Assembly: GCA_047495785.1 (NCBI GenBank)
Contig: JBLDXI010000009.1
Span: 3,658,001 to 3,722,000, forward strand
DNA length: 64,000 bases
Direction: 5' to 3'
DNA from: Lepidodermella squamata
Taxonomy: Eukaryota > Animalia > Gastrotricha
The notes beneath the pieces were generated by a model. It saw only the letters and a program-made list of their open reading frames with translations. It was not told the origin of the DNA and did no database searches. The translations under genes and the position numbers were made by a program. Positions 9,175-37,781 of this stretch are shown here, one piece after another (the first letter of the stretch is position 1; every line of letters begins with the position of its first letter).

Positions 9175-9856
9175 TTAGATTCGACGGAAGCCCTGAAAAA
9201 AAACAAGAAATTATATATTCAGTGGGAAGGAAAGGGATTAAGAGTTATGACTGAAAAAGGTAGAAAGCAAGCGAGCTCATGTGACTTTCCGGAAGAAATA
9301 AAATTTTATCGAACAGATTTACCTTAGCCATAGCTGCTCGCATTCGATCGGTGATATCGCTGTCTTTCATGCGCTTGTTGAGCGAGCGGAGCGGGTGCGG
9401 TCTGTCTAACCGGCGTTTCTGTTCCTCCTGCTCATCGCTTTCGTGTTCGTCGCTTTCTCGTACATCGCTCGCATCACCAGAGAAACGATTTTCATAAGTG
9501 CGCTGGTTGGTGTAACCGTGCAAATCGCCTCGCTTGCTATCCTCGTTTCGCTTGCTGTCCTCGTTTCGCTTGCTATCTTCTCGCTTGCCCAGCGCGATCC
9601 GGCTGGATGGTCGTGCGTCTTTACGCTTTTCCTCTACATGATCTTCTTCCTCGTTGCTTTCATCGGCAAAGAAGTTACCAAAGGCGCGGCGTTTGTCGAA
9701 AAGTTTGTCGTAATTAATCAGGTCCAGCGTTCGCTTGCTGTCTTCGCTACGCTTACTATCTTCGTGACTGTCAAGCATGACAGCCTGACTTGGGGTCGCA
9801 AGCACCATTAAGGCAACAATGGCTGAGATAAAGACAACGGATTTATAGCTATCCAT
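9175..9856 (-). CDS. P1 secreted multi-peptide prepropeptide (2 exons; intron 9193-9322)
   Basis: Signal peptide MDSYKSVVFISAIVALMVLATPSQA; >10 KR/RR sites; 5x EDSKR; SSRIAL-GKR amidation site; RFSGDASDV. AAG|gtaaat...tttcag|GGC gives C-terminus AMAKGFRRI*. Confidence 0.85.
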
Positions 9857-10137
9857 ATTATCCGATAAAAAATTATTTAGTTATAAAATAATAAAAGCAC
9901 CGACTTTAGACAAAAATTCGAAGTTTTTTGCTTTATTAATACCCTTCGTCAAATCAGCTGTCAAAATGTCACAATTTTAACAGGTTCAATTACCAAATAT
10001 CACGTGGTATTGGTTCACCACGCCTCCATGATGTCTGTTTTCGGGAAAGAAGAGCCAAATGATGATCAGATGCAAACATTTTATTACGCAAAATAAATCA
10101 TGTTCATCATCACGGGGCTCAACATTTTTAACCTAGT

Positions 10138-10320
10138 TCATCCGAATACTGGTCGCAGAAGGCGCACAACGCCATGATGATAAGGCCGCTTTTCGATTAT
10201 AGCTGGTACGACGTCGTCATCCATCGTCAGGAATCCGCCCATCAGGGGCCAAGAGTCAGCACCAAAGATTATCAATGGCATTGTCAAGAATGCCAAAAGA
10301 AATATGCGAGAAACTTCCAT
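10138..10320 (-). CDS. P2 prepropeptide (60 aa), predicted PYHHGVVRLLRPVF-amide
   Basis: MEVSRIFLLAFLTMPLIIFGADS signal, acidic spacer, KR, terminal G*. Confidence 0.8.
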   Translation of the reverse strand: MEVSRIFLLAFLTMPLIIFGADSWPLMGGFLTMDDDVVPAIIEKRPYHHGVVRLLRPVFG

Positions 10321-10729
10321 AGCCACGAAATAAGCTATAATTAGCGTAAAAACAAAAATGTCCGAGGTCAAAATACGCAAGTTTCTGTGTTTTAGAAGAA
10401 TGACTATGGCAGAAGGTTTGCGAGTTTTGAGTCGGGCTTATATTTAGGTGTCTGTCCTTTATTCAAGAGTTGTCGAGACAGGCGTGTCCAGAAAACACTT
10501 CGCCGACTATTTGAGTGGAAAAATTATCACGTGGGCGGAAATCATTCAGAGAATCAGGTGAGCAGCACGCCGAGACCCACGCCCCTCCGTACAGAACCCA
10601 TTAAGAGAGACAGTATAATCCCCCGACTTAATATCAGTAATCTATTGATCTGAAAAGACTCGATACAAAAAGAAAACATGTTTTTATTTGTATTTATCGA
10701 AAAACTGGACAACGATGAGCTTTTAATAG

Positions 10730-10957
10730 TCAACTAAAAAATGGCAACATGCGACTTGTCTCGATCGAATTAGACCGCCTCATTAGCATCCCGTCGTCAC
10801 CTGCCACATCGTTGAATTTGACAGCGTTTGGCGAGACAGGAAGCCAGTTTTCAGCGCTGACCAAAGCGAAGTCGCTGTTTAGGCCATCGTTAGGCGTGGG
10901 TGCCGATAAAATAACAGCTGTGAAGGCGATCAGCGTGACCAAAATAACTTTGAACAT
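10730..10957 (-). CDS. P3 prepropeptide (75 aa), box-A variant
   Basis: MFKVILVTLIAFTAVILSAP signal; KFNDVAGD; RR site. Confidence 0.75.
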   Translation of the reverse strand: MFKVILVTLIAFTAVILSAPTPNDGLNSDFALVSAENWLPVSPNAVKFNDVAGDDGMLMRRSNSIETSRMLPFFS

Positions 10958-11456
10958 CTTCGGACCGCTGCACGTGCTCGAACAGGAAACCTTGGACATG
11001 CAGCTTATCAACTGCTAATCCTGCCAAACAAAATGTGTTCTAAAAAAAGTTATACAGCATAGACATAGGATAATGACATAAAAATATTTTCAAGGTTGGA
11101 TTCATAATTCACGCTCGAAAGCTTGAAGAAATCGTGTTGCGAATAGAATGGGCCATGCCTGTGCACATTTGTTCCGCAAACTATGTAATGATAGGTTTCC
11201 ACATGAGCCGCAAATGAAAAAATCGATGTTGAGCCAATTTAGAGTTTTCAGCTCTCATCTTTCAGCCTCATTGTTCTCGCTGTTTGATTACCCTGAGGCC
11301 TTTTCTCACGGAAGAATGAAACTGTGAAACAAAGAAGTGATCCGAATACAACACACATTTTATTAAATTTTCACCGTATTGATTTACAAAGAACTCGAAA
11401 AATAATAAATAGGAATGGCGGTTATATGTTCACAAGGTTGATAACAAATTTGTGGG

Positions 11457-11780
11457 TCAGCGGCGCCTTCCGTAGACCAGCTGAGGAAACTTGACCTTGT
11501 GGCCTTGACGTTTCACGAGACCTTGATCGTCGTCTTCATCTGTGAGCCAAGAGTTTGATCCATCTGCATTGCCTCCATCATTGTTAACATACCGAAAGTC
11601 CGTTTCGATACCATCCGTTTCGCCCGCACCGCCAAACTTCCGCTTGTGCAGGTCTCGATGATGATCTTGAAGATCGTCCAAACTGAACTCAAAAGGCATT
11701 ACATCTTCATCGGCAATAGACGGAACGACGAGATAGCAGAACAATATTGCAGCCATGGAGTAGAAAACTAGCGAAGCCAT
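11457..11780 (-). CDS. P4 prepropeptide (107 aa)
   Basis: Signal; KR-KFGGAGETDG...ADGSNSW; KR-QGHKVKFPQLVY-GRRR (possible pGlu...amide peptide). Confidence 0.85.
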   Translation of the reverse strand: MASLVFYSMAAILFCYLVVPSIADEDVMPFEFSLDDLQDHHRDLHKRKFGGAGETDGIETDFRYVNNDGGNADGSNSWLTDEDDDQGLVKRQGHKVKFPQLVYGRRR

Positions 11781-12592
11781 TCTTATTCTTAGAAAAAAAT
11801 GACTAGGGTGAGTAAAAAAGGGGTAGATTCAAAGAATGGATATTGCGCGTATTATGGTCGGTTATGCGCGCGGCTTAAGCGCTAAGACGAATGCGCGGCT
11901 TTTTTCATTAACCACGGTTCATAAAGTTAATTCCAGATCGTGAAATTCCCGGATTATTAATTTTCTATGCGATTTGTGCGGTCTGATCAGGCAACCACGC
12001 GTAAAAGTTTTTGTCTTGTCCTCTTCTGCCCCACAAATAATTGCGTAATTGGCGGAAAATTATCAGACGAATCATGTCTAGTATGGTAGGGTCACTAAAG
12101 ACTAGTTCTGGAAAAATGCAGAGTGGCCCAACAGCTTCTCTTGTTGGTAACAGATAAAACCAACGAGTTTCGCGTAGATCGTGAATTTAGGACGTGCAGT
12201 TATTTGGGCGTCAGCAATTCACGATATTAAAAGGGCATCGATAATTGCGGTATAAGTGAGCTCCTATCCCCGCATCAACTCAATTACCGGTGTTATCCTT
12301 CCAGGAGTACGTCGTGCTAATGCAAATTTTTTATAAAAGGCCCTTTCATTATGCAGTAGTTGATAATGCGTTAATCTCATCATCAAATATTTGCGGTTTT
12401 TCACGAGGAAATGCGTCGTGTTTGCCATTCAAGAAAGCATCCGTAAATCAAATTTATTAGGGATAAAAGTTCGAATGTCGAGCTAACAAAGAATAGTCAT
12501 TTAATTCACCGAGGGTCATGAAATGAAAATGCCATCGAACTATAATTGTCCTGGGGTCATAGTCATAATAAAAACAACCGGAGTTATCCCAT

Positions 12593-13302: not shown

Positions 13303-13590
13303 TTAATAAGGGTTCGTCCTTGAGAGACCAATTCGATTGCCGTTAACTTTAGCCATCCAATTAGCTGCTCGCAGCTTGTAGTTGCCAATATTCCGCTTCC
13401 CAGCAACCGACATGATGCTGAGAATCTGCTCATCAGTGAGCGGAGGAGGAGGCTGCTGACGGCCGTGGTGGGAGCCATCGTGATTCTCCTTCACAGCATC
13501 TGAACGAAACGGGATCGGCACTGCATGCGAGAAAACCATGATGACAGCAAAAAGTGTTGCAAAGATAAGCAAGCTGCTAACGCGTGACAT
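13303..13590 (-). CDS. P6 prepropeptide (95 aa)
   Basis: Signal MSRVSSLLIFATLFAVIMVFSHA; QQPPPPLTDEQILSIMSVA-GKR amidation site; basic C-terminal peptide. Confidence 0.8.
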   Translation of the reverse strand: MSRVSSLLIFATLFAVIMVFSHAVPIPFRSDAVKENHDGSHHGRQQPPPPLTDEQILSIMSVAGKRNIGNYKLRAANWMAKVNGNRIGLSRTNPY

Positions 13591-13841
13591 GACCAGGCTA
13601 AAATCGTAAAATTATACCACAAGTGATTTGTGTTGCTTTTCAAAATGAACTCGAAACTCCTTATAACTTCGTCTCCGAACTGTTATTTTATTCTAGTATC
13701 TAGGGAATAGTTCTTTCTTAACGGACATTTTCAACAACAGCCACATGACAATGGTAGGAGTCTGACGTAAGAGATTGATACTGGGAATTAAAATGAAAAC
13801 TGCTGACTATATTGCCTCGGGTGATGCATGATGACATTTAA

Positions 13842-14063
13842 TCAAGGCTTGCGCGCCAATGACTTCAGGTGAAATTGCTTTGCGAAACCGGCACCTCGTT
13901 TTGACAGGAGCATCCTGTCGAATGAAGAAGGCCACATGGGCACTTCGTACATACTGCTGTCGTCGTCATCGTAACCCGCCGCTGCTGTGGCTTCCAGAAC
14001 CAACAGCATGACGAAAACGGCGCACATGGCGTAGAAAATGTTGAAGGAATTGAACGCTGCCAT
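13842..14063 (-). CDS. P7 prepropeptide (73 aa)
   Basis: Signal, acidic spacer, KR-GAGFAKQFHLKSLARKP. Confidence 0.8.
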   Translation of the reverse strand: MAAFNSFNIFYAMCAVFVMLLVLEATAAAGYDDDDSSMYEVPMWPSSFDRMLLSKRGAGFAKQFHLKSLARKP

Positions 14064-14586: not shown

Positions 14587-14973
14587 TTACAGAACGCCCA
14601 TTCGGGCGATTTTCTGAAATTGGATCGGCCGATAGCCACCTCTGTGCTGAACGGCCTTGATTGCTCGCTTCTCTAGAGCATCCATTTGATCGTCGTCATC
14701 ATCTTTGTCTTCCTCTTCGTCTTGTGAGCGGCCTCGGTAAAACCAAGACTGTGTCTCTCCTGCGTTCTGTTTAGCTATGGCTTCATTGTCAGCGAATTTG
14801 GATTGCCACCCAATTGCGGCATCCCCGGCTCCGAATCCTTTGCCCCTACCAAGCGTCATAAGAGCTAGAATGTCATCGTCTTCATCGTGGCCATAGGCTG
14901 CTGCTTGATGCAATATCACAGATGTGAAGATCACACTGAATAAAGCGATGCGCTGAAGATCCATTTTCGACAT
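14587..14973 (-). CDS. P8 prepropeptide (128 aa), two-box type
   Basis: Signal; KGFGAGD-x19-AGETQSWFYRG; acidic tract; KR followed by a basic C-terminal peptide. Confidence 0.85.
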   Translation of the reverse strand: MSKMDLQRIALFSVIFTSVILHQAAAYGHDEDDDILALMTLGRGKGFGAGDAAIGWQSKFADNEAIAKQNAGETQSWFYRGRSQDEEEDKDDDDDQMDALEKRAIKAVQHRGGYRPIQFQKIARMGVL

Positions 14974-16168: not shown

Positions 16169-16660
16169 TCAGTTTCCTTTCATTCCAGATGATAAATCAG
16201 GGTCTTCGTCCATATTCTCTGACAAGGCGATCATTTTACGCCACGCAGCAGCAGCTCGGCGTTCGAAATTGTTATCATAGTCTTGCAATTCTTCTAGCTC
16301 CGCATCAGCGATGCCAGACTTCGTTCGAAAGGCTCTGTAACTTGGCTCGAGGTCGACTGTGTCGCTTGAAGTTTCATCGTCCAGGTTCTCACTGCTCGTT
16401 TTTGCCAATCGGCTTCGAAGTGCGGTTGCTTGACTGAGCCCGTAGCTTTCTTTGCTAGAAACATCGCCTGAATCGTCTCTACCAAGCGATATTTTGTAGT
16501 TCAGATCTGTTGGCCGCAATTTTTCGTTGTCGAAGTTCTCCTCAGAGAAGTCTATGGCGTAGTCAGGTTCTGAAAGTTCATCATTCATGTTGAAAGGGGC
16601 TTGCATGGTTGATCCGAAGCATAGTAGTAAAACTACAAAGAAGAGGGAAGCGTTCAGCAT
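16169..16660 (-). CDS. P9 acidic secreted precursor (163 aa)
   Basis: Signal MLNASLFFVVLLLCFGSTMQA; KISLGR-DDSGDV; RR/RK sites. Confidence 0.75.
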   Translation of the reverse strand: MLNASLFFVVLLLCFGSTMQAPFNMNDELSEPDYAIDFSEENFDNEKLRPTDLNYKISLGRDDSGDVSSKESYGLSQATALRSRLAKTSSENLDDETSSDTVDLEPSYRAFRTKSGIADAELEELQDYDNNFERRAAAAWRKMIALSENMDEDPDLSSGMKGN

Positions 16661-16995: not shown

Positions 16996-17334
16996 TTAAT
17001 CATTGTCTCTATCACTCCCAGGCCAGTCGCTCTCAGGTGAATCACCAAAGTTTGAATCTTCTCCGCTCTCGAATTTCTCAGCGAAATTCTGCGGAGCAAG
17101 AATCAGCTGATCAATAGACTCTTCATCATAGTCATCAGGCAATGCCTCGTTTCGGAACAAAGACGGAATAACATCTATTAAGGAGGGCATGCGTAGCATC
17201 AAATCGGCCATCTGCTGTCTTCTGAGTTGCTCTGAACCATACTCTGCATTGTCATCTGCTTGAACGTTTATTAGGGTGTTCGCAGAAATTTGTGATGCCA
17301 GCATCACCACTATGACGAGGACTAAAAATGGCAT
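16996..17334 (-). CDS. P10 acidic secreted precursor (112 aa)
   Basis: Signal MPFLVLVIVVMLASQISA; RR; KFESGED...ESDWPG (degenerate boxes). Confidence 0.7.
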   Translation of the reverse strand: MPFLVLVIVVMLASQISANTLINVQADDNAEYGSEQLRRQQMADLMLRMPSLIDVIPSLFRNEALPDDYDEESIDQLILAPQNFAEKFESGEDSNFGDSPESDWPGSDRDND

Positions 17335-17874: not shown

Positions 17875-18848
17875 CTAGAGAAACATTAAGTGTACAGAAT
17901 GTTGGCGGAGGGGGAAAGTTTCGTTTTCTTGATGCTTTTCGATCACCACTGAAGTTGCCGTCATTAAAGGAATCGTGTCCGGCACTTTGCTACTGTAATT
18001 TGCCACCTGTGAGAGACACATGGATGTTGTCGTCAAAGAGATGCAAACAAGATGCAAGATGAAAGATACCGTATTTCTCGAAAATTTACCGCGGGCTATA
18101 TTTATGAACAAATGATTTTTGATTCGGGTTGTATTAGGGAGTGGGGATATATACGGGTGTGCTGTTTAATTGCGAATCATCACAAAAAGCCGCGAGCAAT
18201 TCGTATTAAGACGACGTTTTTAGATTGTTTTATTTGTCGATTCAGTGAAAAAGTGAAAAAGTTACAATTTCTTGATGTTGTGATTTTGTGATTTTGTGAA
18301 CTGGTGATGTTGTAGCCATTCCTTGACGCATCGACGATCGACCTTGAAGACTCTCGAGGCATCGTTTGCTGAGATTGCTTTTGCATGATCAGCCACGCGA
18401 ATTTTGTATGCGAGGGAATACTTGCGGTGCCGCTTTCGCTTGTCTTCTTCGGACACCTGGACGGAATCTTGAAGACGATCAGGAGAGCCAGCCATCATCG
18501 ATTCCAGAAGGTTAAAACGATTAAGAAGGATATGAAAATGTTAAAATAAAACTCTGTGTCTCAGCTAGTGAATGCTGAATGGGCATTTTCTGCTGGCTTA
18601 TGAATGGTGCCAAGATCAGACGTTGCGAAGCTGCTTACGCGATAGCTAATCACTGATTACGATAATGCGTCATTAATAAGGCTTTTCTTTTGTTCCAACG
18701 CATGCTTCGCCCAAATTAAAATAGCTGTGGTACAATTTCGAGGCCTGGGTTAAATATGAACAAACGATTTTTTCGTCGGGTTGTATTAGGGAGCGGGGAT
18801 ATATACAGGTGTGTCGTATATTTTCGAGAAATACGGTACATGATTCAT
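17875..18848 (-). pseudogene. Probable 28th precursor disrupted by the pogo-like insertion
   Basis: Removing the element and one TA gives ATG AAT CAT GTA TCT TTC...: MNHVSFILHLVCISLTTTSMCLSQ...VVIEK...FL* (67 aa), on the same strand as its neighbours with a signal-like N-terminus. Confidence 0.5.
18067..18838 (-). mobile_element. Non-autonomous pogo-like DNA transposon with Brinker-type HTH remnant
   Basis: TA-ccgtatttctcgaaaat ... attttcgagaaatacgg-TA; ~60-bp subterminal direct repeats; ORF 18262-18498 RKYSLAYKIRVADHAKAISANDASRVFKVDRRCVKEW. Confidence 0.85.
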
Positions 18849-19604: not shown

Positions 19605-19832
19605 TCACTCGATATCCATAGCCAAGCCCTCGCCGAATCGATCTTGTAGTTTTTGAGGGAATATGATGTTCGATAATATGCCAGCGCCGTCGAATTTCCC
19701 GTGGCTGTGTAGATCAGTGTCTTGGCTATCTTCAAATTCTTCGTGGTGCATAGGCGCCCGGTTCAACGCCATCACAGCTGCCATGAGGGCGAACAAAACC
19801 AATAAATTGAAGCTAGAGATTAAACTCGACAT
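19605..19832 (-). CDS. P11 precursor (75 aa), box A
   Basis: Signal MSSLISSFNLLVLFALMAAVMA; HGKFDGAG. Confidence 0.75.
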   Translation of the reverse strand: MSSLISSFNLLVLFALMAAVMALNRAPMHHEEFEDSQDTDLHSHGKFDGAGILSNIIFPQKLQDRFGEGLAMDIE

Positions 19833-20175
19833 TTTACAAAAAGATTGGGGCTTGTAATGAGAATGCAAAGTTGGGCAAAATTTATTCTACTTATAAATTT
19901 AGTGCGTGGAACTACGCAAATTTTCTTGACCATTGAATTTAAAGCGTTGTTAATTCTTAACTGTTCTAGTGAGATAATTGCATTACAAAACGGCACTTAT
20001 TGGTGCAAAAGTATATGAAAATACACGCAAGTTTATTTTAAATTCACAATAATTACAATCGCCATTTTCTCTACGGCTAAAAGATGCTGAAACGTCAAAT
20101 GAGCGTGATGATTTTATTCGCTTCGAATCAGATGTGTTGGATGGACGTGGTCAGACCGGAAACGTAGAAATGCAT

Positions 20176-20397
20176 TCATCGCTCATCGCTGTCTTCTAGC
20201 GGCGAGAGCGGGGCGTAATTTCCTGGTTTCGCTCGGCCTCCTACACCATAGAACCAGCCTGCGGTTTTGCCGGCTGCGCTCTCCATCATATTATCAGTTG
20301 GCAACTCGACGCTCACTTGATCCACGTCACCAGCGTTGTCGAATCTCGCTGCTATTGCTGAAACGAGAAGAAATAACAGCAACACAGAGGCTAGCAT
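20176..20397 (-). CDS. P12 precursor (73 aa), two-box type
   Basis: Signal MLASVLLLFLLVSAIAA then RFDNAGDV...AGKTAGWFYG. Confidence 0.85.
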   Translation of the reverse strand: MLASVLLLFLLVSAIAARFDNAGDVDQVSVELPTDNMMESAAGKTAGWFYGVGGRAKPGNYAPLSPLEDSDER

Positions 20398-20772
20398 TTG
20401 AAAGCTACAACTTCGAATCGTGGTTGCATTCAGGTCGAAAAAGTAGAAATGTTTACCAGAAGAAATGAGCCAGACGGGCTTTCTATTCAATGCATTCTTT
20501 CATTTTGATTGCTCCGCCCACTCCAGAGGAACGGACCTCTTGAGACTTTTTGTCATTAATCTGCCCCTCCGTGATCGCCGATCAATCTAAGAGTCGAAAT
20601 AATGAGATTCGCTGAGAAAACCTTCAAAATAAAATAATAGCGTAGTTCGGTGAGATTTCGGTGGGTTAAGGCTTTGAGTGGAAACTAACATTGCACCATA
20701 CATCAACGTGGTTTTCCCGTTATTTTCACAAAAATAAAATTTTATTAGCCTTGGATTACGCCTTCATAAGTT

Positions 20773-21198
20773 CTATTCGTCTTCAAAATTATAGTGGCCG
20801 TACCACCAACCGTCTGTTTGGCCGGAAGGACTCATCATTTGCAATATCCAAGTCAGCTTTTTAGCCAGAGATGGCCGGGGATCGACAAATTGTGAACGAG
20901 TGCGCATCTTCGGTTGGCGAATGACAACTGGTAGTTTTTCGAGAACATCGATGTCAACCCCATCTCTGTCACCGTGAAGCACTGATGCTACGTTGCCGAA
21001 ACCAGTGTACTTCCCATGATAATGACCCCGAGAATCATTGTGATCCGAATCATCGCCATCCGCCTCTTCTTTGTGCTCGTGAGATGATGATGAATCGTCG
21101 TCGATTGGTCGTGGCTGAACGCCTTGGCTAAGGCATACAAGTAATAGATGAAGGGCGACGATAAGAGGAGCAATTTTAGCGTGCATGATTATTAACAT
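20773..21198 (-). CDS. P13 precursor (141 aa), two-box type with long spacer
   Basis: Signal; acidic/His tract; HGKYTGFGNV...SGQTDGWWYG. Confidence 0.85.
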   Translation of the reverse strand: MLIIMHAKIAPLIVALHLLLVCLSQGVQPRPIDDDSSSSHEHKEEADGDDSDHNDSRGHYHGKYTGFGNVASVLHGDRDGVDIDVLEKLPVVIRQPKMRTRSQFVDPRPSLAKKLTWILQMMSPSGQTDGWWYGHYNFEDE

Positions 21199-21736
21199 CG
21201 TCTATGAAGTGAAATAAGTCTCTGTTTATCAGTACTTGGTCACTCAATCCATTCAAGCATGGTGTTTGTCCGTAGCTAATGGGTGAAATAGCGAATCAGG
21301 AGCCCACGCCTCTCATAAATCATACGTCTCATTGAGTAAAGACAAGTAGTATAGAACACATTTACCTATATTTCAGCGAAATAGTACTACGTGATCCAGA
21401 ATCACCATCGATAATCTATCTGAAATGATAGGTGAAGATGTAAAAGCTCGTGTTATAATGACCATGTCTGTGCCTGGCGGGCCGGATAGTTGAAGGTACA
21501 TGTTTTAGGTTCGACTGATTTAGCTGTTTCCCCCGCAACGGCGGAAAGCTCCTTCTCAATTCTGCCACTCACTTTAAAAGGCGGAAGTAATCGACTTTCC
21601 TTTGCAGTCATAATTAAAATAATGTTTCAATAGCCACTGTAATATTTTATTGCTCAAATGAATTTTAATAGAACTACGCTAAATTTAACAGGTTCCTTGA
21701 TGATGAATAATTTCGAGTCTCACGCCTACGTTAAAT

Positions 21737-22063
21737 CTAATTCCTGCTGTTTTTGCTCTGTCTGATAACGAACATCTTGAATCGGTTCGAATTCGGTGAT
21801 CGTAGAAGGGCAAAGCTCGCAGCGCGAGGAAAGTCATCGCTATCTTCCTGCTGAGTGGTAGACTTAGATCCACGGTTGCCGGTGCCGTAGTACCAACTGT
21901 CAGTGTCTCCCGCAGGCATATCCATGTCTCCTCCCAAGTTTTTTTCAGCAAAGATAGGCGACACATCACCAGAGTTTTTGTATTTAGCAAAGGAGCAGTT
22001 TGATTGCCTGAAAAGTAGTAGAACCACCAGCAAGGGGCTAAAGATTGAAGAGAACATTGCCAT
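21737..22063 (-). CDS. P14 precursor (108 aa), two-box type
   Basis: Signal; AKYKNSGDV...AGDTDSWYYG; basic tail. Confidence 0.85.
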   Translation of the reverse strand: MAMFSSIFSPLLVVLLLFRQSNCSFAKYKNSGDVSPIFAEKNLGGDMDMPAGDTDSWYYGTGNRGSKSTTQQEDSDDFPRAASFALLRSPNSNRFKMFVIRQSKNSRN

Positions 22064-22493
22064 TGTTGGGTTATAATCTTTCGCTATCGGGCGCAATCGG
22101 TACGATTACAATCAAGGAAATGGAATCGTTCGATTGAGTTTGTTTCCAGAATGTGGCCACTGGCTACGCATTCTGTCTGACTGTGCCTGTTAGGGGAAAT
22201 CGTTGCTAATCTGTCAATTCTCAACGGTATCCAATATTTATTTTGTATCGGCACGAATCTATGATGCCTGTTCTCCTACGTTGGCCAAGGGGCACACTTT
22301 TTACCGCTGGGACTTTAAATTAGCTATTTACAGAAATCGCAGTTTATCTGGGCTCTGATCTGAATTTTTAATTAGGGATAAAGGACAGGACAAACGCTAT
22401 CTAAAATGATAGATCAACTAACGAGTTATTAACATATTCAAGCTATCACACAAAAGATATTTAGACTGAAGCATCTGATGCGTATTCCGAGGC

Positions 22494-22826
22494 CTAGAAA
22501 GCCCCCATAGAAAGTCTCTTTGAAAAAGACTTCCGGTACGCTTTGATCTGAGCAGCCTTTCGCTGCAGCTCTTTTCGCTCTCTTTCTGTCCTAGCATTGG
22601 CAATCATCGCCTGTAAATCATCATCCTCAGCGGCTTGCTTTATCAGTCCAGCCAGAGTCTTTTTGTCATTGGCACCGTACCACCAGGCGTCTGTCGGGCC
22701 GGATAATGGGGCTTGCCTTCTAACCAGATGCCGCAGACTCTCATCTTCGGGAGTTCCAGAGGTTTGCGCGGTAAGGGCGGAACATGAAATAAGGATTGGC
22801 AGCAGAAGTAACCAGCTGGAACTCAT
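22494..22826 (-). CDS. P15 precursor (110 aa), box B only
   Basis: Signal; RR-QAPLSGPTDAWWYGAND-KK; helical basic tail; KR. Confidence 0.85.
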   Translation of the reverse strand: MSSSWLLLLPILISCSALTAQTSGTPEDESLRHLVRRQAPLSGPTDAWWYGANDKKTLAGLIKQAAEDDDLQAMIANARTERERKELQRKAAQIKAYRKSFSKRLSMGAF

Positions 22827-23505
22827 GGTTAAAAAAGCAACCTAGAAATCTAGATATGAAAAGACTGAATAGACTTGAAAATTAGGTCGCAGCAAAATTG
22901 ATAAAAATCGTGATATTCCACTTCAACACATCATAGCATTCGTGAGGTACATTCCACTGTTGCTTTCTGAATGCATGTAGGAGGCGTTTGCGTGATTGCT
23001 GATTGTGAGTGGGACGTTCGTGGTCAAAGGGGGGCCGTACACAGGGAAATCAATTCTCAAATGTTCTCGAAATACTTATAATAAATATCTCATTCTCTAG
23101 ATTTTGAGTGACTTTCAAGTATCAGCGGATAGATTTTGGAGAATTTTATTCGCTAGCATCATTTCCCGTTCCATGGCGCGAGAAAGCCCTCTCGGTGGGC
23201 ATTCGGAAACAAATCGGCTGAATGGGCGCTTTTAGGCGGAAATCAGACTAATTGTACAAAGGCGCTTCTTTTTCACGCCAATTGTAACGCCGCTTTCAGT
23301 TTCTTAAAATGCCTGTAATCAAATCTGTGTGAACGATTCTTCGCTTCGGTGAACATCTTCCTATTAGACACTTGAAGCTAAATTAGGGAATGCGTATGCC
23401 AAGAAAACAGCGGAATAGAACTTGCTCTTTATTTCTCGTATCGAATATAGTTCATATACCTCTTCAAACAGAGGGTGTGAATGGTATTAAGTTGGAATGG
23501 TTCAT

Positions 23506-23799
23506 TCACAGTAATCTCTTGACTGCAAGCAATCGCATAGGGATTTTTCGTGGTAGATAAGCCGCAAGGGCTCGCTGGACATCCTCATTTCGCTGTTCGA
23601 GAGGCAAGTCTTTCCCAGACTTGTAATTCCCATACCACCATCCGTTAGTTCGACCAGCCGAGTTAGGATACACAACTGATGGATCTAGTGGGCTAACAAA
23701 GCGAGAACTGACATCCCCAGCTCCGGTAAATTTAGCCGAAACACTGATCGCCTGAAGGAAGAAGGAAGTGATCGCTAATATGACAATTGCAGACGGCAT
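23506..23799 (-). CDS. P16 precursor (97 aa), two-box type
   Basis: Signal then KFTGAGDV...AGRTNGWWYG. Confidence 0.85.
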   Translation of the reverse strand: MPSAIVILAITSFFLQAISVSAKFTGAGDVSSRFVSPLDPSVVYPNSAGRTNGWWYGNYKSGKDLPLEQRNEDVQRALAAYLPRKIPMRLLAVKRLL

Positions 23800-24085
23800 T
23801 TTTTTTTAGCAAAAATCGCAATGAAGTAGGCATATAAGATCAAATAACTACACCAAAATTACACCTAATAGCCTTTGATGTGTTTATTATTTATTCATCG
23901 TACGTGGGGCAACGCAGCGAAGAGCACTTCTCGAATGTCTCGAATTTTCTATCAGGCGTAAATCGGTTCATACCCACGCAATGATGATCAATCAATTGTT
24001 ACAACATACGATGCCAGTTTATTTTGAATAAACGGATCAAAAGAAAGGTTTCATACTTCATCATATAAGTCTGATCCATGTCTGT

Positions 24086-24391
24086 TCAAGCATCCTCGGG
24101 GCTGATCACCTTTAGGTTGTAGGTGTACTTTCGAAACGGAGACCTGAAGCCGTTTGCTTCGTTCTTGAAGACGTAGACATAACGCTTCCTAGAACTTGAC
24201 CGCTTCTTGCGTGAGTAACTCCAATCAGTCGTCCTGCCAGCCGTGCTTGCAAATCGGTTCCGCATAATGGGTCCGTATTCGTAATTGCCAACCCTTCCAG
24301 CACCTGTAAACTTTGCGTGCAAAGATGGTGGCATAACGGTTAATACGAGCAAACAACAACAGACTGCAATTGTAAAACTTGACAGCTTCAT
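24086..24391 (-). CDS. P17 precursor (101 aa), two-box type, basic
   Basis: Signal MKLSSFTIAVCCCLLVLTVMPPSLHA then KFTGAGRV...AGRTTDWSYS-RKKR; RKR. Confidence 0.85.
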   Translation of the reverse strand: MKLSSFTIAVCCCLLVLTVMPPSLHAKFTGAGRVGNYEYGPIMRNRFASTAGRTTDWSYSRKKRSSSRKRYVYVFKNEANGFRSPFRKYTYNLKVISPEDA

Positions 24392-24575
24392 TTTGCAAAA
24401 GATGACCAAGCGAATTGAAAAATATGTGTTTTTATGACCAATCTTGTTATGATGTGATGCCTCCCTATCCCCAGAAGTAATCACATTTCAACACTGCATT
24501 TTTCAATCAATGCATTTCTTTATTTTGAAACATATGCAATAGGAATAATCAATACTAGTACTACCATGCGTTTTT

Positions 24576-24911
24576 TTACTTCATATTTGGTCTAAGGTAT
24601 GTGCCATATTGCCATCCATCTGTAAGCCCAGCAGCTGAGTCTTCGTATTCATCGGCCTCCGCCAGGTTTAGAGGATAACGCTGTAAGATGACCGACTCGG
24701 CATCTCCCGCGCCTGATAGCTTCCCAAATGGCTCCAGGAACCTCATCGCATCAGAATTGTCCTCCCGAAGAAGGAAATCCTCGAAGTCGTCATTTGGCCT
24801 CGCCACCACGGAGGAGGCTAGTTGCATAAAAATTATCGCTATCAAAATCATGGCTGGCCAGTCTACTACTACTACACGGGGTTGAGCGAGTGATAAACAG
24901 CGGCGATGCAT
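24576..24911 (-). CDS. P18 precursor (111 aa; alternative start 24851), two-box type
   Basis: Hydrophobic MILIAIIFMQLASSVVA; GKLSGAGDA...AGLTDGWQYG. Confidence 0.8.
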   Translation of the reverse strand: MHRRCLSLAQPRVVVVDWPAMILIAIIFMQLASSVVARPNDDFEDFLLREDNSDAMRFLEPFGKLSGAGDAESVILQRYPLNLAEADEYEDSAAGLTDGWQYGTYLRPNMK

Positions 24912-25068
24912 TGATTTTAATATAAATCATCTCTGACATCATCACACGTCTGTCTCGAGAGGGTCCACGCAGTGTCCACAACAAAATGCACACCTGAGAG
25001 CATACTTGCATCGTTTATTTAGCTAATTCAATATTGAATATAATATAAAATCGCAGGCAGATATTAAT

Positions 25069-25371
25069 TCAATGCTGGCCGAAAAACCACCCATCCGTGA
25101 GGCCTGCAGGGCTCTGATCATCAGCTAAGGCTATGCGTTGCATTATTCCCTTGAAAACAGCCGCTCGCATGCCATTCGATGACGCAAACATTGACGGCAA
25201 TTCAGCCCGGTGCATTTCAGCCGATGCATCGTGATTTGTCGCATCTTCATCACTTTCCCCACTTACATCGCTAACAAATCGCAACCGGGTTAGGGTTGGA
25301 CGGGCGTTGTTAGGGTAAGGCACGCATATGAAAACGATAACACATAAGGTCAAACACAAAGAATGATTCAT
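25069..25371 (-). CDS. P19 precursor (100 aa), box B at C-terminus
   Basis: Signal; RFVSDVSGE; PAGLTDGWFFGQH*. Confidence 0.8.
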   Translation of the reverse strand: MNHSLCLTLCVIVFICVPYPNNARPTLTRLRFVSDVSGESDEDATNHDASAEMHRAELPSMFASSNGMRAAVFKGIMQRIALADDQSPAGLTDGWFFGQH

Positions 25372-25602
25372 CTTTCTCAGTAAAAAAACGTGAAACGAAT
25401 AAATAAACCTCCGAATTTTGATTGATGAGAAAAGATTAACTTTTTAATTATGGGAATTGCTTCCTAATAATCCGAAAAATTACTTGCGGGGTTTATCATC
25501 TTTCATCTTTCAAGCATCCAGGTTGCACAGTATGAAGCAAGTTTATTGGGAAAAACAAGCGGATACACGATTGAATATATGCATTTTGGTGATCTATGTC
25601 CA

Positions 25603-25845
25603 TCAATAGTCATCCATTTTAAGTTGTCTGGGCAATTGATGGCTCCAGTCGTCGTCGTTCCAATAGCTGCGCTTCACGTCCCCGGAATATGCTGCCTTTC
25701 CGCCGCGGCGCTTCACCAGCCCAGCGTCGCTGAATGACTTGCGTTTGAAGCCGCGAAACCAGTCGTCATCGTCGGCGTTTGCCGAGAAAATTAACCCTAG
25801 CACCAGAGCAGCCACGGCTAACCAATAAATCACTCGAAAATGCAT
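25603..25845 (-). CDS. P20 multi-peptide precursor (80 aa)
   Basis: Signal; DDDDWFRGF-KR-KSFSDAGLV-KRR-GGKAAYSGDV-KR-SYW. Confidence 0.85.
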   Translation of the reverse strand: MHFRVIYWLAVAALVLGLIFSANADDDDWFRGFKRKSFSDAGLVKRRGGKAAYSGDVKRSYWNDDDWSHQLPRQLKMDDY

Positions 25846-26209
25846 CCTTTTTCAAGATTAATTCTGCAAAATAACAATCATATAGCTTTTTTACTGTAAA
25901 CAATATAGGAGAGAAAATAGATAAGATGACCAAAAGCAGGAAAATAATCATCGGCTAGCTTCTAATGTATCTCTTTGTAATAATTCGTTTTAGAAATATT
26001 CCGAAAATGATTGCGGGTGAGAGTACTAACATTTGTCTCAAAAGACCGCCCTTATTTCTCGGCTTATACAATTTTAGCTAAAAGTACAAATAACAAAAAT
26101 ACACACCGGCTCCAGGGTTATTTATTCATCAACTCGAATGACAGTCTAATTATCATTTTTTTGACAGTCACCAGTTCGAAGAAAGGTCAAATATTTTGTC
26201 CGGTTTTAT

Positions 26210-26398
26210 TTATGACGAAGAAACGCGTTTCGCTTTGTCCAGTAACTTTGAAATACCCAGTTGGAAGCCGTCGTTTCTCGGTGGATGGGGCAGATGCTCA
26301 CCGCTCGAATCGAAGTCCTCGTAGACCTGCGAAAAAACTGTCCTCATGGCTATAGCCTGGACAGCCATCAATAGCAATATCGCTACCTGAGCCAGCAT
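26210..26398 (-). CDS. P21 precursor (62 aa), degenerate two-box
   Basis: Signal MLAQVAILLLMAVQAIA; DFDSSGE...NDGFQLG; KR. Confidence 0.65.
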   Translation of the reverse strand: MLAQVAILLLMAVQAIAMRTVFSQVYEDFDSSGEHLPHPPRNDGFQLGISKLLDKAKRVSSS

Positions 26399-26853
26399 AA
26401 TTTCATTGCACCTCAAAATTATTTTCATAATAAAGGTAGTGCCCTTTAATATATGCCTCTACAACTCTAAAATGCCGGTGCAGCGATTTTTTGCTAGTAA
26501 ATAATTTATAATAAAAAGCGCGCAAAAATCACTGACGAAACATGATTAAGGATTCATTGATTCTACGGCAGCAATCAATGTCCCCTTCCGACTAAGGGCC
26601 GAAGTTAATTTTTTCTGTAAAAAATAATAGGGAAAAAATATTGAAAATTTTCAATTTTTTATTCATGACTTACGAATAACAATAGACATATCAGCGTGAA
26701 GAGAGTTTACAGAAAAAAATAACGTGAAAAATAAAGTGCAAGTCAAATTTCACAGGTGCGATGGAAAAAAAATAGATTTTCGCGAAAAATATAGTACGGG
26801 AAAAAATTGAAAATCTATGAGCGAAATTAATTTGCGGTTTTATTGTCTTTATT

Positions 26854-27198
26854 TTACGAATCTACTTCGTAATCATTCTCGCTAAAAAACGCCGAGCGCT
26901 TCTTCGTATCGCCCGAGTCAACAAATTTACTGCCACGGCTGCGCTTTTTCGTATCGCCAGAGTCGATGAACTTGCTACCGCGGTTTCGTTTCACGTAAAA
27001 ATCGCCGTAATCTTCGAGGCTGCTGCCCGACCGCTTTTTGACATCTCCCGAGTCGATGAATTTACTGCCGCGGACTCGCTTCATATCGCGGTAGTAACTG
27101 CGTTTCACCAAACTGAAGTCGTCATCGCTCCAGCAGTAACAAGCGGCTATTAGCATTGCTAGGACTAATAAGGCCAAGTTGATGGGGTGGATCATCAT
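26854..27198 (-). CDS. P22 multi-copy peptide precursor (114 aa)
   Basis: Signal; three KR/KKR-flanked copies of xRGSKF(I/V)DSGD(V/T). Confidence 0.9.
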   Translation of the reverse strand: MMIHPINLALLVLAMLIAACYCWSDDDFSLVKRSYYRDMKRVRGSKFIDSGDVKKRSGSSLEDYGDFYVKRNRGSKFIDSGDTKKRSRGSKFVDSGDTKKRSAFFSENDYEVDS

Positions 27199-28810
27199 TT
27201 CAGCAAAGTTATATATAAGTTATATCCTATACTACAAAATTAAAAATCTGAATCATTGATGAATAAAATCCATGTTTCAAATTTAATTAATATACAGCCG
27301 GACTTGAGTGGGAAGAGACTTTACTATTGGATCGTGTAGTATCGATTTCAGAAGCCTTTTCGCTTTATTAAATAAAACTTTGGCATCATGAAATATTAAA
27401 AACGACCAGGTATGAAATGCGAGATGCTGACTCACGCGGTCCGGTATCAGTCGCCATCTTTTTGTCTAATAACGCCCTCCGATTTTTTTTCGACCTAAAA
27501 ACAAACACACGTGACGTAACCTGCCAAAAATTGTCCAGAGCCGAGGGATTTTTTCAGACAGGGTTCTTATTTCAAAGTAATTTGCTATAGCGACAATTAT
27601 CTAGGGATTTTTCTAGAGTAAACTGCACTTTTCAGAAAAATATCCGCCCTCAGCTTTTTGAGTGGGAGAAATTTCTGGAGAAATAACTATTTGACAGAAA
27701 ACAGACATTTAACGAAAAAAAATACCGACTGATTTTGAACTCGTTCAAATTATACCGAATGCAAATGAGTAATTACCGCGAGCAATATGTTCGATGCGCG
27801 TCATAATTATCCGCACTTTGCGGCTATGATCTAGCCAGCGAGCGTCCTGTCCCAGTGGACTGGTTTTGTTTTGCCACAACTTATCATGTTTTACGCCGCA
27901 GTGGTTCAGAAAACGCGCAGTAATTTATTAACACAGGGGTCACAAGCGCGCATATATTGCGGCGAATAATATGCGAAAACAACAATTTGTCATCATTTAA
28001 AATCCGAGGTCAAATTTATATTTCTTCGCAAACTATAAGCTCACATAAGCAGGAGGCTTTCGAAAAACGAGCTAAAGATTACTAGCGAAAAAGGTGGATA
28101 ATTAAAAGTGGAAAAAATCAGAACAGAATTAATTTTCTTTAGAAAGTAGCCAAAAAAATAAAAATTGCCAGTGTTGCTACTTATCGGGATTATTTCGAAA
28201 CAAAGCCATATACAATTTGGGTACCTAGCCCGATCAACGATCAACGAGAAATATTACGACAGGAGGATATTTTTTTAAAGAATATGGATTTTATTTTGAA
28301 AATCGAAGCATGATATAAGTATCCTAATTCCAATCAAGCAGAATTTCCTTAAGGGTGACTTTCTTTCCAGAGGCTTGTCAAGGTCTTGATGCGGTAATAC
28401 TGTCAACGCGACTTATAGCATGAGAGAGGGAAAACGGTCACTTTTAATGCGACTTGATAGCAATTTTTTTAACCAATTTACGGCTTCGGTGTTCCAATGT
28501 TCTCAAAGCTTACATTTGAAAGTAATGTTAGTCTGTGTCAGTACCAAACGAATTTCAATTGTTTATTTTCAAATAATATACGAGACCGGGCGATTCAAAA
28601 TCAATCAAAATAATATATAAAATATGTAGAGAAGTATTCGAATGGAAAAATCGAAAATCTGCAAAGGTTCCAAACTTCTGCCACTGATAATATTTACAGG
28701 AAAAGTGTTTCAACTCTGACGTGAAATGATAACGTAGGTGCAATAATAATAAAAGGAGATGACAAAAGTCAAATATTGGTACATCCACGTAGCCGACCGT
28801 TATGCCTGTG

Positions 28811-29047
28811 CTATTTGCTATCAAGCGGGTAATCCTCGTCAACGAAAATTTCCTCGCGTTTATCGAAATCTTCCGATGTGCTGCTATCCATATCAGTCGG
28901 AACGTAGTGCCGTTGAACGGTATTTTTTTGATCCTCGAAGGACATCCATCGCTTCGAGTCGACCTTGTCGTCCTCGTCGAAAAACTCGGCAGAAATGGCG
29001 CTGAGAACAAGGCCAAAAATTACGCAGACCAGTGCGATTTTCGACAT
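28811..29047 (-). CDS. P23 precursor (78 aa)
   Basis: Signal; DKVDSKR-WMSFEDQKNTVQRH...DKR; paralog of P24. Confidence 0.85.
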   Translation of the reverse strand: MSKIALVCVIFGLVLSAISAEFFDEDDKVDSKRWMSFEDQKNTVQRHYVPTDMDSSTSEDFDKREEIFVDEDYPLDSK

Positions 29048-29495
29048 TTTTTTAGAATACTGCTATTAATTCTGTAGAAAATTCTACTTTTTTAAATGCT
29101 TTTCTCCAGAAAAACAGCTTTATATTGAATTTTCGTCCGAAGCGGCCATTTTTATTCGCCTCTCCATGTCAAGTTGGCTTCCGTTTCTATTGCGTGATAT
29201 TTGAAATGTGTCAGCTACGTCAGGGCCTTAGCGTCACATTTGGATATTTGACAGGAAGCGAGTCAAATTCCTCCTTAAAATAATCTGGGCATAAAAATAA
29301 ATTGGCGAATTTCCAAAAAAATATGTTTTTATTTTCTGTGAGTATCAGAGTGAGATAATATAAAGGCCACCAAAAAAAAATATGTGAAGAGCTGATTTCG
29401 AGAATTAGCATCGTCATTGTCAAAAATTAATATTTAATATCTGCTATAAATTAAAATCTCAAAGTTTATCGGCTGAATTTTGGACTTGTGTCTCA

Positions 29496-29768
29496 TTATT
29501 TGTTTTCCTCAGCGCTGGCTTCATCGACGAAAAAGCCGCTCGGGAACAAACTTGCGCTACGTTTATCGCTATCAATCGCTTCGTAACTACTGTCAGCGGC
29601 GTTATTGCTGCCAACAGCTTGGTGGTGGCGAATGGCGTCCTGGAGGGCGAAATAGGACATCCATCTCTTTGAATCCACCTTATCGCCCGAATCATCGTCA
29701 AACATCTGAGCCGAAATACCTCCGAAAAACAGCCCAAAAATGCCGAAAACTAGCGAGATTGAACGCAT
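29496..29768 (-). CDS. P24 precursor (90 aa)
   Basis: Signal; DKVDSKR-WMSYFALQDAIRHH...DKR...FFVDE; paralog of P23. Confidence 0.85.
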   Translation of the reverse strand: MRSISLVFGIFGLFFGGISAQMFDDDSGDKVDSKRWMSYFALQDAIRHHQAVGSNNAADSSYEAIDSDKRSASLFPSGFFVDEASAEENK

Positions 29769-29952
29769 TTTATAGTCAAATTTGAGAAAAAAAATCTAAA
29801 AAAAAATCAGCAAATAAATTAACCAGCAATTTTACTCATGACAGAACGAATAAAAATTATGCAAATAATTAAAGCGACATCTTGTAGATCTCTAAAAACT
29901 AAAATATTACAGGTAGGAATGATTGCTGGAAGGTGATTTTTATAGGTAGCAA

Positions 29953-30360
29953 TTACTCGTCGTCCTCTTCGTCGCCGTATCGCCAACCTTCAAGGTTGCC
30001 GGCGCCTGCAAACTTGCTGCGTTTTTCATCCTCGGCATCAATCAAATCGCCAGCGTCTTCGAACTTGCTCTTCGCCCGTTTATTCGCGCTTCGCTTTTCT
30101 TCCTCGGCGTCGAGTAGGTCACCGGCATCTTCGAACTTGCTCTTCGCCCGCCTGTCAACATCACCGGCGTCATCTAGTTGGCCCTTGAAGCGGCGTTTGA
30201 ATGCAACGATATCTAGAGGGTCGTAATCGATATAGCGCGGCGTTTTGGCCTGACGTTTTACTGCCGAGAGATCATCGTCTGAATCGAACATGACAGGGCT
30301 GCACTCAACAGCGAGTAGAACTGTCGCTGCTAGTAAAATGAAACATTCGATTCTAGCCAT
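29953..30360 (-). CDS. P25 multi-copy precursor (135 aa) with fused A+B peptide
   Basis: Signal; LDDAGDV; 2x AKSKFEDAGDL; KR-SKFAGAGNLEGWRYG. Confidence 0.9.
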   Translation of the reverse strand: MARIECFILLAATVLLAVECSPVMFDSDDDLSAVKRQAKTPRYIDYDPLDIVAFKRRFKGQLDDAGDVDRRAKSKFEDAGDLLDAEEEKRSANKRAKSKFEDAGDLIDAEDEKRSKFAGAGNLEGWRYGDEEDDE

Positions 30361-30723
30361 TTTTAATCCGAGGGAACGGTCGGGATCAATCACAGTAAAA
30401 TCGGGAATATTAAAACTAAATAATCCGTATAATGACGCTGGAATTTAATTCAATCAAAAGCCGAGCGGGATGAGTGCTCCGCTTGAATATTAATCTAGAA
30501 ATTGATTTACCATTTCAGCCCACCTGCCGCCGAATCAGCAGAAAAACTCCAACGAGTTGCCTTTATTCATATTTTATCACATCAGTATGTTTACATAGGT
30601 GATTTGCGTATATCATCCCTCAGGAATTTGTAATTAATAAAACAAATTGCGCGAGTATTGTTCGACAAAAAAGTTGACCTTTACACGCAGACTAGTGTGC
30701 CGATGGATGTGATCTAATTTAAA

Positions 30724-31044
30724 TTACTTGCCGTAAACAGGACGCAGTTTGAAGCCGCGCATAAAAGCTTCCTTCTCCATGTCACCACGCTTGATAAACA
30801 GCGCCCAGTTGCTAGCTCGCCGCCTCCGAACCAAGTTTTCATCTTCTGCGGCATCGTCATCGTTGACATTTTCAGTTGAACTGTCAGCCGACCGTTTAAT
30901 CAAGGCGAAATAAGCGTCCTGTTCTTCGCTGCTGCTGTTTCCGTCGCCTTCGTTAGAATCAGCCACGTCGACCTGCAACGGGGCGGCTTCGATGAATTCG
31001 AGGAATGCGAAGATAAAAATCGCGAAAATGCAATATTTGTTCAT
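30724..31044 (-). CDS. P26 precursor (106 aa), predicted ...KLRPVY-amide
   Basis: Signal; KR, RRRR and KR sites; GDMEKEAFMRGFKLRPVY-GK*. Confidence 0.85.
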   Translation of the reverse strand: MNKYCIFAIFIFAFLEFIEAAPLQVDVADSNEGDGNSSSEEQDAYFALIKRSADSSTENVNDDDAAEDENLVRRRRASNWALFIKRGDMEKEAFMRGFKLRPVYGK

Positions 31045-31545
31045 GTTTAACAGCTGATAAAAAATGTCTAAACAAATCTATTTTAAGAGTTATTTTGAAT
31101 GATCTTTTCTTGTGAATGGAAAGTTCGCGTTTACAATCGATCGATTTCCCAGGTGATGAGATCGAAGCTGGTGGGAAAACGTTAATTTCCGGAACCGCCT
31201 ACGGTGCCTTGCCTAGCTTTTGACAAAGGTAAAAACGACCTTGACATGATGCGCATGAGCTGAAAAACGTCGGAACTTGAACTAAATCGCCGGGGGAGAG
31301 GAGAAGGAAAACAGCTGAAACTCTTCTGGAAAATCGCGTGGACCACACTCTCGGTTTGATTTTTAAAATTCCAAAGGGGCTGTTATATATGCGTGCTTTT
31401 ATTACAAAATATCTACCGTGCTAGGCAATTATTGTAACAACATAAAACGCCAAAATATGTCCATTGGGTTTTTAAGGGCTGATGTGTTTTGAAAATTTCC
31501 CCCACGCGTCAGGTGGTTGGTTTTGCCGTCGGAAATTGCCAGTAA

Positions 31546-31776
31546 TCAGCACTCATCGTCGGCGCACTCTGAGGAGGATGACGACGAGGAAGAGTCGTCC
31601 GGTATCGCGAAGGCACGTTTGATGAGCGCCAGGCGCAAATTCCCAGCCGGAGCGCGGAAACCACCGCGGCTGCGCGACGGTGCGAAATTCGCTTCGACTT
31701 GAACAAAAATCATCATTAACGAGGCAATTATCATAATTGCCGCCCATAGGTTTTTTGCCGTGCAAAATGCAGCCAT
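31546..31776 (-). CDS. P27 precursor (76 aa)
   Basis: Signal ending VEA; GFRAPAGNL; ALIKR (shared with P26); poly-Ser acidic tail. Confidence 0.7.
   Translation of the reverse strand: MAAFCTAKNLWAAIMIIASLMMIFVQVEANFAPSRSRGGFRAPAGNLRLALIKRAFAIPDDSSSSSSSSECADDEC

Positions 31777-34485: not shown

Positions 34486-37781
<3,296 letters not shown>

Follow-up and report, generated by a model that had tools for sequence, protein, structure and literature searches.

The DNA analyzed here is a stretch of 64,000 nucleotides (nt) from the gastrotrich Lepidodermella squamata (contig JBLDXI010000009.1, positions 3,658,001 to 3,722,000; hereafter "the window"), whose minus strand carries, between positions 9,245 and 31,776, a tandem set of 27 secreted-peptide precursor genes. 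All of them are open reading frames (ORFs) of 60-203 amino acids (aa) that begin with ATG and have an N-terminal signal-like segment, and 27/27 lie on the minus strand, at a density of one per 0.83 kb (27 genes in 22.5 kb). When scanning for ATG-initiated ORFs no shorter than 45 aa whose hydrophobic core of 12 residues begins within the first 14 residues, we found 28 on the minus strand versus one on the plus strand at 9-32 kb, one per strand in the remaining 41 kb of the window, and six, both strands summed, in three 10-kb control stretches elsewhere on the contig. This confirms the co-oriented cluster reported in an earlier note made from the letters alone, together with its signal peptides, as a crude -1/-3 rule finds a plausible signal-peptidase site in 27/27. 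The genes were numbered from G1 (31546-31776) to G27 (9245-9856), a 28th ORF (25766-25951) not being counted. The spacers from stop codon to ATG measure 184-2270 nt (median 417), most genes have an AATAAA within 160 nt past the stop codon, and the upstream regions share no common motif except T-rich tracts and the neighbor's AATAAA. As the note had stated, the run is free of other host genes, and its sole foreign element is a weak remnant of a transposase helix-turn-helix (HTH) domain. The additional disrupted copy that it listed left no trace: neither tblastn nor a motif scan found a pseudogene remnant in the two large gaps of the array.

Judged by their sequences, at least 16 of the genes are one family with a common ancestral gene. 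With signal peptides removed, phmmer connects 16 of the 27 in one component at E < 0.01 (G2, G3, G6, G8-G17, G19, G20 and G24), and G4 and G5 form a separate pair. The links within the family are carried by two short boxes, box A ([KR]FxGAGD[VL]) and box B (AGxTDGWWYG), with a basic C-terminal tail as a third, looser element. Box A was observed 12 times versus 0.18 in shuffles (18 versus 0.34 for a loose form of the pattern) and box B nine times versus 0.01, while the six-frame translation of the rest of the window holds two box A matches and no box B. Both patterns were drawn from the array itself, and the copies in a related animal (see below) validated them. In G11, G12, G14 and G16, box A stands right after the signal peptide and box B follows 29 residues later. 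G3 has four box A units, the final one continuing into box B (SKFAGAGNLEGWRYG), and G6 has three. The genes and associated features are as follows, with lysine-arginine written as KR:

31546-31776, minus strand: G1, 76 aa, one KR, Ser-run tail; no sequence link to the family
30724-31044, minus strand: G2, 106 aa, tail end ...LRPVY-G-K, a putative amidation signal; weak family links
29953-30360, minus strand: G3, 135 aa, box A in four copies set between KR/RR sites, with box B fused to the fourth copy
29496-29768, minus strand: G4, 90 aa, paralog of G5 (phmmer 7e-8), DKVDSKR-WMS motif
28811-29047, minus strand: G5, 78 aa, paralog of G4
26854-27198, minus strand: G6, 114 aa, three SKF(I/V)DSGD(V/T) units, each flanked by KR/KKR sites
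26210-26428, minus strand: G7, 72 aa, one KR
25766-25951, minus strand: candidate 28th ORF, 61 aa, start resembling a signal peptide, end ...NFL-G-KRRR; inside the contig 25642-26064 of run X2
25603-25845, minus strand: G8, 80 aa, KRK/KRR/KR sites bracketing two degenerate box A units
25069-25371, minus strand: G9, 100 aa, C-terminal box B, no dibasic site
24576-24851, minus strand: G10, 91 aa, box A and box B
24086-24391, minus strand: G11, 101 aa, box A right behind the signal peptide, degenerate box B, basic tail
23506-23799, minus strand: G12, 97 aa, canonical, with signal peptide, KFTGAGDV, 22-residue spacer, AGRTNGWWYG and basic tail
22494-22826, minus strand: G13, 110 aa, box B and long basic tail
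21737-22063, minus strand: G14, 108 aa, box A behind the signal peptide, box B; phmmer 1e-7 to G16
21201-21205, minus strand: trans-splice acceptor of G15, tcatAG/acgATG (the slash marks the joint); the loose contig end at 21203 is the leader of the spliced leader (SL) RNA
20773-21198, minus strand: G15, 141 aa, acidic pro-region, box B close to the C-terminus
20176-20397, minus strand: G16, 73 aa, box A behind the signal peptide, box B, no dibasic site
19605-19832, minus strand: G17, 75 aa, box A-like GKFDGAG
18262-18498, minus strand: remnant of a transposase HTH domain, located in the array's largest gap, weak Pfam match to HTH_Tnp_IS630 (E 0.0023)
16996-17334, minus strand: G18, 112 aa, strongly acidic, no clear box
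16169-16660, minus strand: G19, 163 aa, acidic, box A-like DDSGDV
14587-14973, minus strand: G20, 128 aa, box A, box B, KR, basic tail with GGYRPIQF
13842-14063, minus strand: G21, 73 aa, acidic pro-part, KR, basic peptide of 17 aa with RKP end
13303-13590, minus strand: G22, 95 aa, KR followed by a basic peptide of 29 aa
12593-12844, minus strand: G23, 83 aa, acidic pro-part, KR, basic peptide with RKP end
11457-11780, minus strand: G24, 107 aa, box A as KR-KFGGAGE, then KR-Q...QLVY-G-RRR (a predicted pyroGlu/amide-type peptide)
10730-10957, minus strand: G25, 75 aa, degenerate box A KFNDVAGD
10138-10320, minus strand: G26, 60 aa, KR, 14-residue peptide ...LLRPVF, C-terminal Gly as putative amide donor
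9245-9856, minus strand: G27, 203 aa, with EDSKR repeats, ten sites that contain KR, and a box A-like FSGDASDV; the ORF's 3' end is uncertain

The candidate 28th ORF shares 80 nt with the start of G8 and is read in a different frame. It might encode a further product, represent a decayed copy or have arisen by chance. The tails of G20 (14587-14680, GGYRPIQFQKIARMGVL) and G13 (22494-22545, KAYRKSFSKRLSMGAF) align with each other. They recall the nematode NLP-12 peptides (DGYRPLQFamide, GYRPxQF) and the AYRK start of SIFamide, and tail peptides also resemble orcokinins; these likenesses are too short to serve as evidence.

Beyond this locus the family is scarce. Its profile matched no second locus in the whole 121-Mb genome, and among 1.84 billion representative proteins it had three true matches, P0121 (E = 6.8e-9), P0123 and P0124 (range 6.8e-9 to 6.7e-4), a fourth match being rejected as an unrelated repeat protein. 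A word-based search of 5.8 billion proteins with the family alignment of the window gave nothing at E <= 10, and the same search with both species in the alignment returned only seven proteins of the relative; two scans of JGI metagenome contigs yielded pattern matches but no confirmed relative. All three proteins come from ENA metagenome assemblies that also hold a COQ6 62% identical to that of the window, in conserved gene order, and we therefore attribute them to one related animal. For comparison, the best named database matches of the window's COQ6 are 35% identical. The relative carries at least 10 copies, with three, four and three co-oriented tandem genes lying 0.4-0.9 kb apart on its contigs L019, L021 and L024, respectively. 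Each has a signal peptide, GKFxGAGD[LV] and SGxTDGWYYGS, and P0121 contains box B three times, with Pro-Arg-Arg between the copies.

A tree of the two-box members is star-like with very long branches, support being found only for neighbors on one contig, and it contains no one-to-one orthologs between the two species. The order of the duplications is thus unreadable. Together with the phmmer links, this tree indicates repeated local duplication and rapid divergence outside the boxes, in line with the tandem origin proposed in the earlier note. Its view that the genes are lineage-specific and belong to no known family also stands: the profile searches found a single locus in the genome and, among public protein sets, a single relative, Pfam gave no family match for any of the 27 genes nor for eight scanned proteins of the relative, and no already described clustered family was recovered from Pfam or the literature. 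No paper was found to match the box motifs or the spliced leader described below, the supplements of taxon-specific papers being outside the reach of this search. Within the searched material, we found no description of this family, of a two-box design of its kind or of an array of this size, whereas clustered prepropeptide genes as such were already known.

Transcription was assessed over the 6-kb stretch 20100-26099, which holds nine genes (G8-G16), by comparison with three public runs, X1, X2 (2015) and X3 (2014). X1 is a DNA run with an even depth of ∼105; X2 and X3 are transcriptome-like, both being patchy, and contigs of X2 terminate in SMART cDNA adapter sequence. RNA-like contigs or depth cover eight of the nine genes. 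In X2, contigs lie on G16 (20100-20410), G15 (20783-21203), G14 (21697-22118), G13 (22421-22850) and G8 (25547-26064), with a depth of 10-17 on G10 and low depth on G12; in X3, they lie on G16 (20100-20450), G15 (20903-21203), G9 (25086-25346) and G8 (25525-25791). Depth on G11 is near nil in both runs. The intergenic stretches 21300-21499 and 22900-23099 have zero depth in X2 and X3, and 20500-20699 has a depth of 1.06 in X2 and zero in X3. Over the genes tested, the RNA contigs are colinear with the DNA and show no canonical intron joint, which bears out, for these genes, the earlier statement that all but one (P1 in the note) appear intronless. Differences between runs and reference within the ORFs number 30, of which 19 are synonymous and 11 non-synonymous, where 77% non-synonymous would be expected (P = 2e-6; ratio of non-synonymous to synonymous polymorphism, pN/pS, ∼0.17), and none falls inside the conserved boxes. 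This points to purifying selection on the ORFs.

The X2 contig of G15 continues for 22 nt past position 21203, and the reverse complement of this extension has 45 copies in the genome (0-2 mismatches, 27 exact), mostly in arrays with a period of 0.6-0.9 kb and with AG/GTATGT directly after the leader; in the SL RNA genes it takes the form ...AACCAT CTGCGAATTTGATTTGTGTCTAAG / GTATGT. The extension is a spliced leader, joined three bases before the start codon of G15 at tcatAG/acgATG, and this contig is RNA evidence that the predicted spliced leader of this genome is used on mRNA. It was observed on this one mRNA contig among those on the nine genes tested. The leader resembles that of Schistosoma in its 5' AACC-TC start and a GATTTGT stretch, but ends in AAG instead of ATG (PMC3795323), and it is absent from the leader lists in PMC3795323 and PMC7986045. 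The 27 genes are all co-oriented; the spacers of 184-2270 nt, the AATAAA behind most genes and the zero RNA depth in intergenic stretches speak against an operon. An operon resolved by spliced leaders is thus not supported, although contigs could miss a short-lived precursor.

Several peculiarities were seen in the same runs. X1 has paired alternative contigs at 23406-23551 and 24236-24348 (seven and three differences), each at about half depth, indicating heterozygous haplotypes in or near G12 and G11. An X3 contig skips 47 nt (25574-25620), which removes the stop and last codons of G8; the ends of the skipped piece (AA..TT) are non-canonical, and it was rejected as an intron. X2 has a 3-nt insertion at 25575, near the 3' end of G8, and this end seems to be polymorphic. 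Downstream of G13, X2 contigs (22154-22455) extend over 340 nt, one of them with a plus-strand poly(A) run at 22455, which would fit a long 3' untranslated region (UTR), antisense transcription or a chimera that arose in the library. X2 also contains many low-depth strand-switch joints.

The mature parts of the products consist to 18% of Asp and Glu and to 14% of Lys and Arg, with 6.9% Gly, 3.0% Tyr and, at 0.1%, next to no Cys, as the earlier note had remarked. KR occurs 43 times in them versus 11.8 in shuffles (3.6-fold; 0/5000 shuffles reach 43), while RK is at chance (14 versus 11.75), and such an asymmetry is what convertase sites would produce. At least one KR is present in 18/27 genes, and KR sites flank the box A units of G3, G6 and G8. 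The architecture of dibasic sites that the note had described holds for the array at large and fails in five core members, named below. A similar restriction applies to its proposal of substrates for the amidating enzyme PAM: a Gly amide donor is found in G24, G2, G26 and the overlapping ORF 25766-25951, and the other 24 genes have none. KR-Q...QLVY-G-RRR in G24, ...LRPVY-G-K in G2 and ...LLRPVF-G in G26 read as classical amide signals. In about 11 genes, the last 20 residues are net-positive and stand behind a net-negative front, often after KR. An AlphaFold2 model of G12 (18-sequence alignment) has only the signal helix (2-22) and one C-terminal helix (67-81), the residues from box A through box B forming coil with a predicted local distance difference test (pLDDT) score of ∼55, and the Atlas model of P0124 has a pLDDT of 0.38; the region between the boxes is thus predicted to be unfolded. 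The language-model neighbors of P0124, G12 and G6, which we treat as a lead only, are almost all neuropeptide precursors (scores 0.88-0.91), namely PDH, DH31, gastrin/CCK, galanin, NPF and NPFF, and for G6 allatostatin-A, PBAN, tachykinin and FLP-1. As for processing enzymes, convertase P_proprotein domains number at least 10 in the genome, which also has 39 Cu2_monooxygen (PHM-type) matches. Most of the latter, which are of PHM/DBH type, sit in one large tandem cluster (G000:C13:1.99-2.36 Mb) and several have in-frame stops, an unusual expansion of copper monooxygenase genes.

Outside the array, the window encodes beta-TrCP, a Numb-type PTB protein, COQ6 and the RNA polymerase I subunit A49. 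The COQ6 gene is a single exon of 481 aa, and over 51863-62447 the order of a beta-TrCP-like WD40 gene, COQ6, Med20, a kinase and a RING gene is shared with contig L017 of the relative. Directly upstream of the array (32114-44294), an NAD(P)-binding (NAD_binding_10) gene is represented on the minus strand by four or more copies or exons, which form a second tandem family. A 261-aa Ala-rich ORF at 36070-36855, with weak matches to copia-type gag and DUF4219, is probably a remnant of a long terminal repeat (LTR) retroelement. Mitochondrial COX1 was not found in a search of the assembly, and neither the nematode cuticle-collagen N-domain nor the arthropod R&R cuticle domain was found in the genome, both being weak negatives since their controls were prokaryotic.

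The interpretation that we lean towards, and consider modestly probable, is that the locus is specific to this lineage, diverges rapidly and encodes secreted peptides that are processed; these would most likely be signaling peptides of the neuropeptide or hormone type. We favor processing because only the boxes are kept, among the paralogs and in both animals, and because each box multiplies between basic sites, as bioactive units do. Multi-copy neuropeptide precursors of protostomes (FMRFamide/FLP, allatostatin-A, tachykinin, orcokinin/pedal-peptide) have the same signal peptide, acidic spacers, lack of Cys and lack of fold, the same short units repeated between KR sites (here in G3, G6, G8 and G27) and an occasional Gly amide donor, and they are the nearest language-model neighbors. 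They differ in that no sequence or profile match connects them to the array, in being encoded by one or a few dispersed genes as opposed to 27 in one array, and in that each precursor here has two distinct boxes, of which box B is not classically amidated. Several observations weigh against our interpretation. The core members G9, G10, G14, G16 and G17 are without any dibasic site and might be secreted without cleavage. In box B, the final Gly is followed by non-basic residues, so that this box is not a classical amide donor, and only three to four genes have one. The acidic pro-part and cationic tail of about 11 members would suit host-defense peptides equally well. Signal peptides were called by a home-made rule combining a hydrophobic core with the -1/-3 positions, and the RNA comparison covers nine of 27 genes, uses assembled contigs from runs that are not recorded as RNA, and leaves G11 almost uncovered. 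Finally, an earlier description under another name could exist in a taxon-specific paper or supplement.

The array might instead supply a host-defense or exocrine cocktail, made in the epidermis or a gland, in which the variable cationic tails would be the active parts (antimicrobial, toxic or deterrent) and the acidic pro-parts, possibly with the boxes, would neutralize or sort them. Amphibian skin precursors of the preprodermaseptin type have such a plan, with a signal peptide, an acidic pro-part, KR and a variable, often cationic or amidated C-terminal peptide, and in that group antimicrobial peptides and hormone-like ones come from a single gene family. Conservation in the amphibian precursors lies in the signal and pro-region, with a hypervariable peptide behind them, whereas here the internal boxes are conserved, and there is no homology between the two. 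Besides the cationic tails behind acidic fronts, the copy number, unusually high for a single neuropeptide family, would fit a defense function, and tandem expansion with very long branches and no one-to-one orthologs is the pattern of the nlp-29 antimicrobial peptide cluster (PMC2453101). Like that Caenorhabditis elegans cluster (nlp-29/cnc), the array consists of tandem short secreted peptide genes with lineage-specific duplication and with synteny combined with high divergence, but nlp-29 comprises six genes in 12 kb, its peptides are Gly/Tyr-rich repeats, and it shows positive selection (PMC2453101). The array has two fixed boxes and no YGGWG-type or other Gly/Tyr-rich repeat, and its polymorphism reflects purifying, not diversifying, selection. 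In addition, what is conserved is the boxes and not a whole pro-region, the boxes are duplicated between cleavage sites, and many members, as well as most copies of the relative, lack the cationic tail. On this evidence, we regard a defense cocktail as rather unlikely, if well worth weighing.

A still less probable option, to which we give little credence, is that the products are secreted disordered proteins that remain uncut and serve as matrix, adhesive, egg-coat or cell-surface ligands, box A with its core (A/S)GD(V/L) being in one version an integrin-type xGD ligand. The five members without dibasic sites and the predicted disorder between the boxes agree with this option, and the strong and specific enrichment of KR does not. 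AGDV is the integrin-binding end of fibrinogen gamma, and box A resembles this C-terminus and the xGD of disintegrins, a resemblance and nothing further: box A is internal and the proteins are Cys-free, so that neither the free C-terminus nor the Cys-framed loop of integrin xGD ligands is present. In the relative, three family genes directly follow an integrin alpha gene (L019:1-2808, with FG-GAP repeats and a GFFKR tail). The integrin ortholog here (G000:C9:4456026-4460829, 57-65% identity) is on the same contig, but 735 kb from the array and with no family gene beside it, and the linkage is thus found in one species only. As for the idea that the ORFs are fortuitous, or their transcripts non-coding, in a region of odd composition, short ORFs are common anywhere and most members have no detectable homolog, yet the 28 to 1 strand excess, the excess of synonymous variants, the AATAAA signals, the conservation of the motifs in another organism and RNA contigs that fit the limits of ORF plus UTR refute this explanation, whose probability we consider negligible.

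In the interpretation that we favor, most of the genes are copies of one ancestral gene, whose precursor would have consisted of a signal peptide, an optional acidic pro-part, box A, a variable spacer, box B and an optional basic tail. A separate short mRNA would arise from each gene, receive the leader by trans-splicing a few bases ahead of the ATG and acquire its poly(A) tail after AATAAA. We infer the secretion, cleavage, amidation, bioactivity and cell type of the products from the sequences: the signal peptide would direct them into the secretory pathway, proprotein convertases would cut at KR and RR, a carboxypeptidase would trim the ends, and a few members would have their C-terminal Gly turned into an amide. 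The output would comprise acidic box A peptides, Trp/Tyr-containing box B peptides and cationic tail peptides, some of them amidated (...RPVFa, ...RPVYa, ...QLVYa).

We tentatively advance the plausible, though not yet probable, further idea of a new peptide signaling family in one poorly sampled animal lineage, with two ligands (box A and box B) and variable tails per precursor, encoded by 27 neighboring genes. To our knowledge, the array would be the largest tandem set of neuropeptide-type genes in an animal, if the neuropeptide interpretation is true. In a bolder form of this idea, the co-oriented and trans-spliced array may be transcribed as one unit and deliver a fixed peptide cocktail. 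Almost nothing is known of the peptide signaling and defense repertoires of small, fast-evolving invertebrate lineages, because homology searches miss the precursors. The two motifs that survive between distant relatives are candidates for synthesis, antibodies, mass-spectrometry targets and receptor de-orphaning, and the 27 paralogs, with their single-box, double-box and multi-copy forms, would offer a natural series on how precursors gain, lose and multiply active units.

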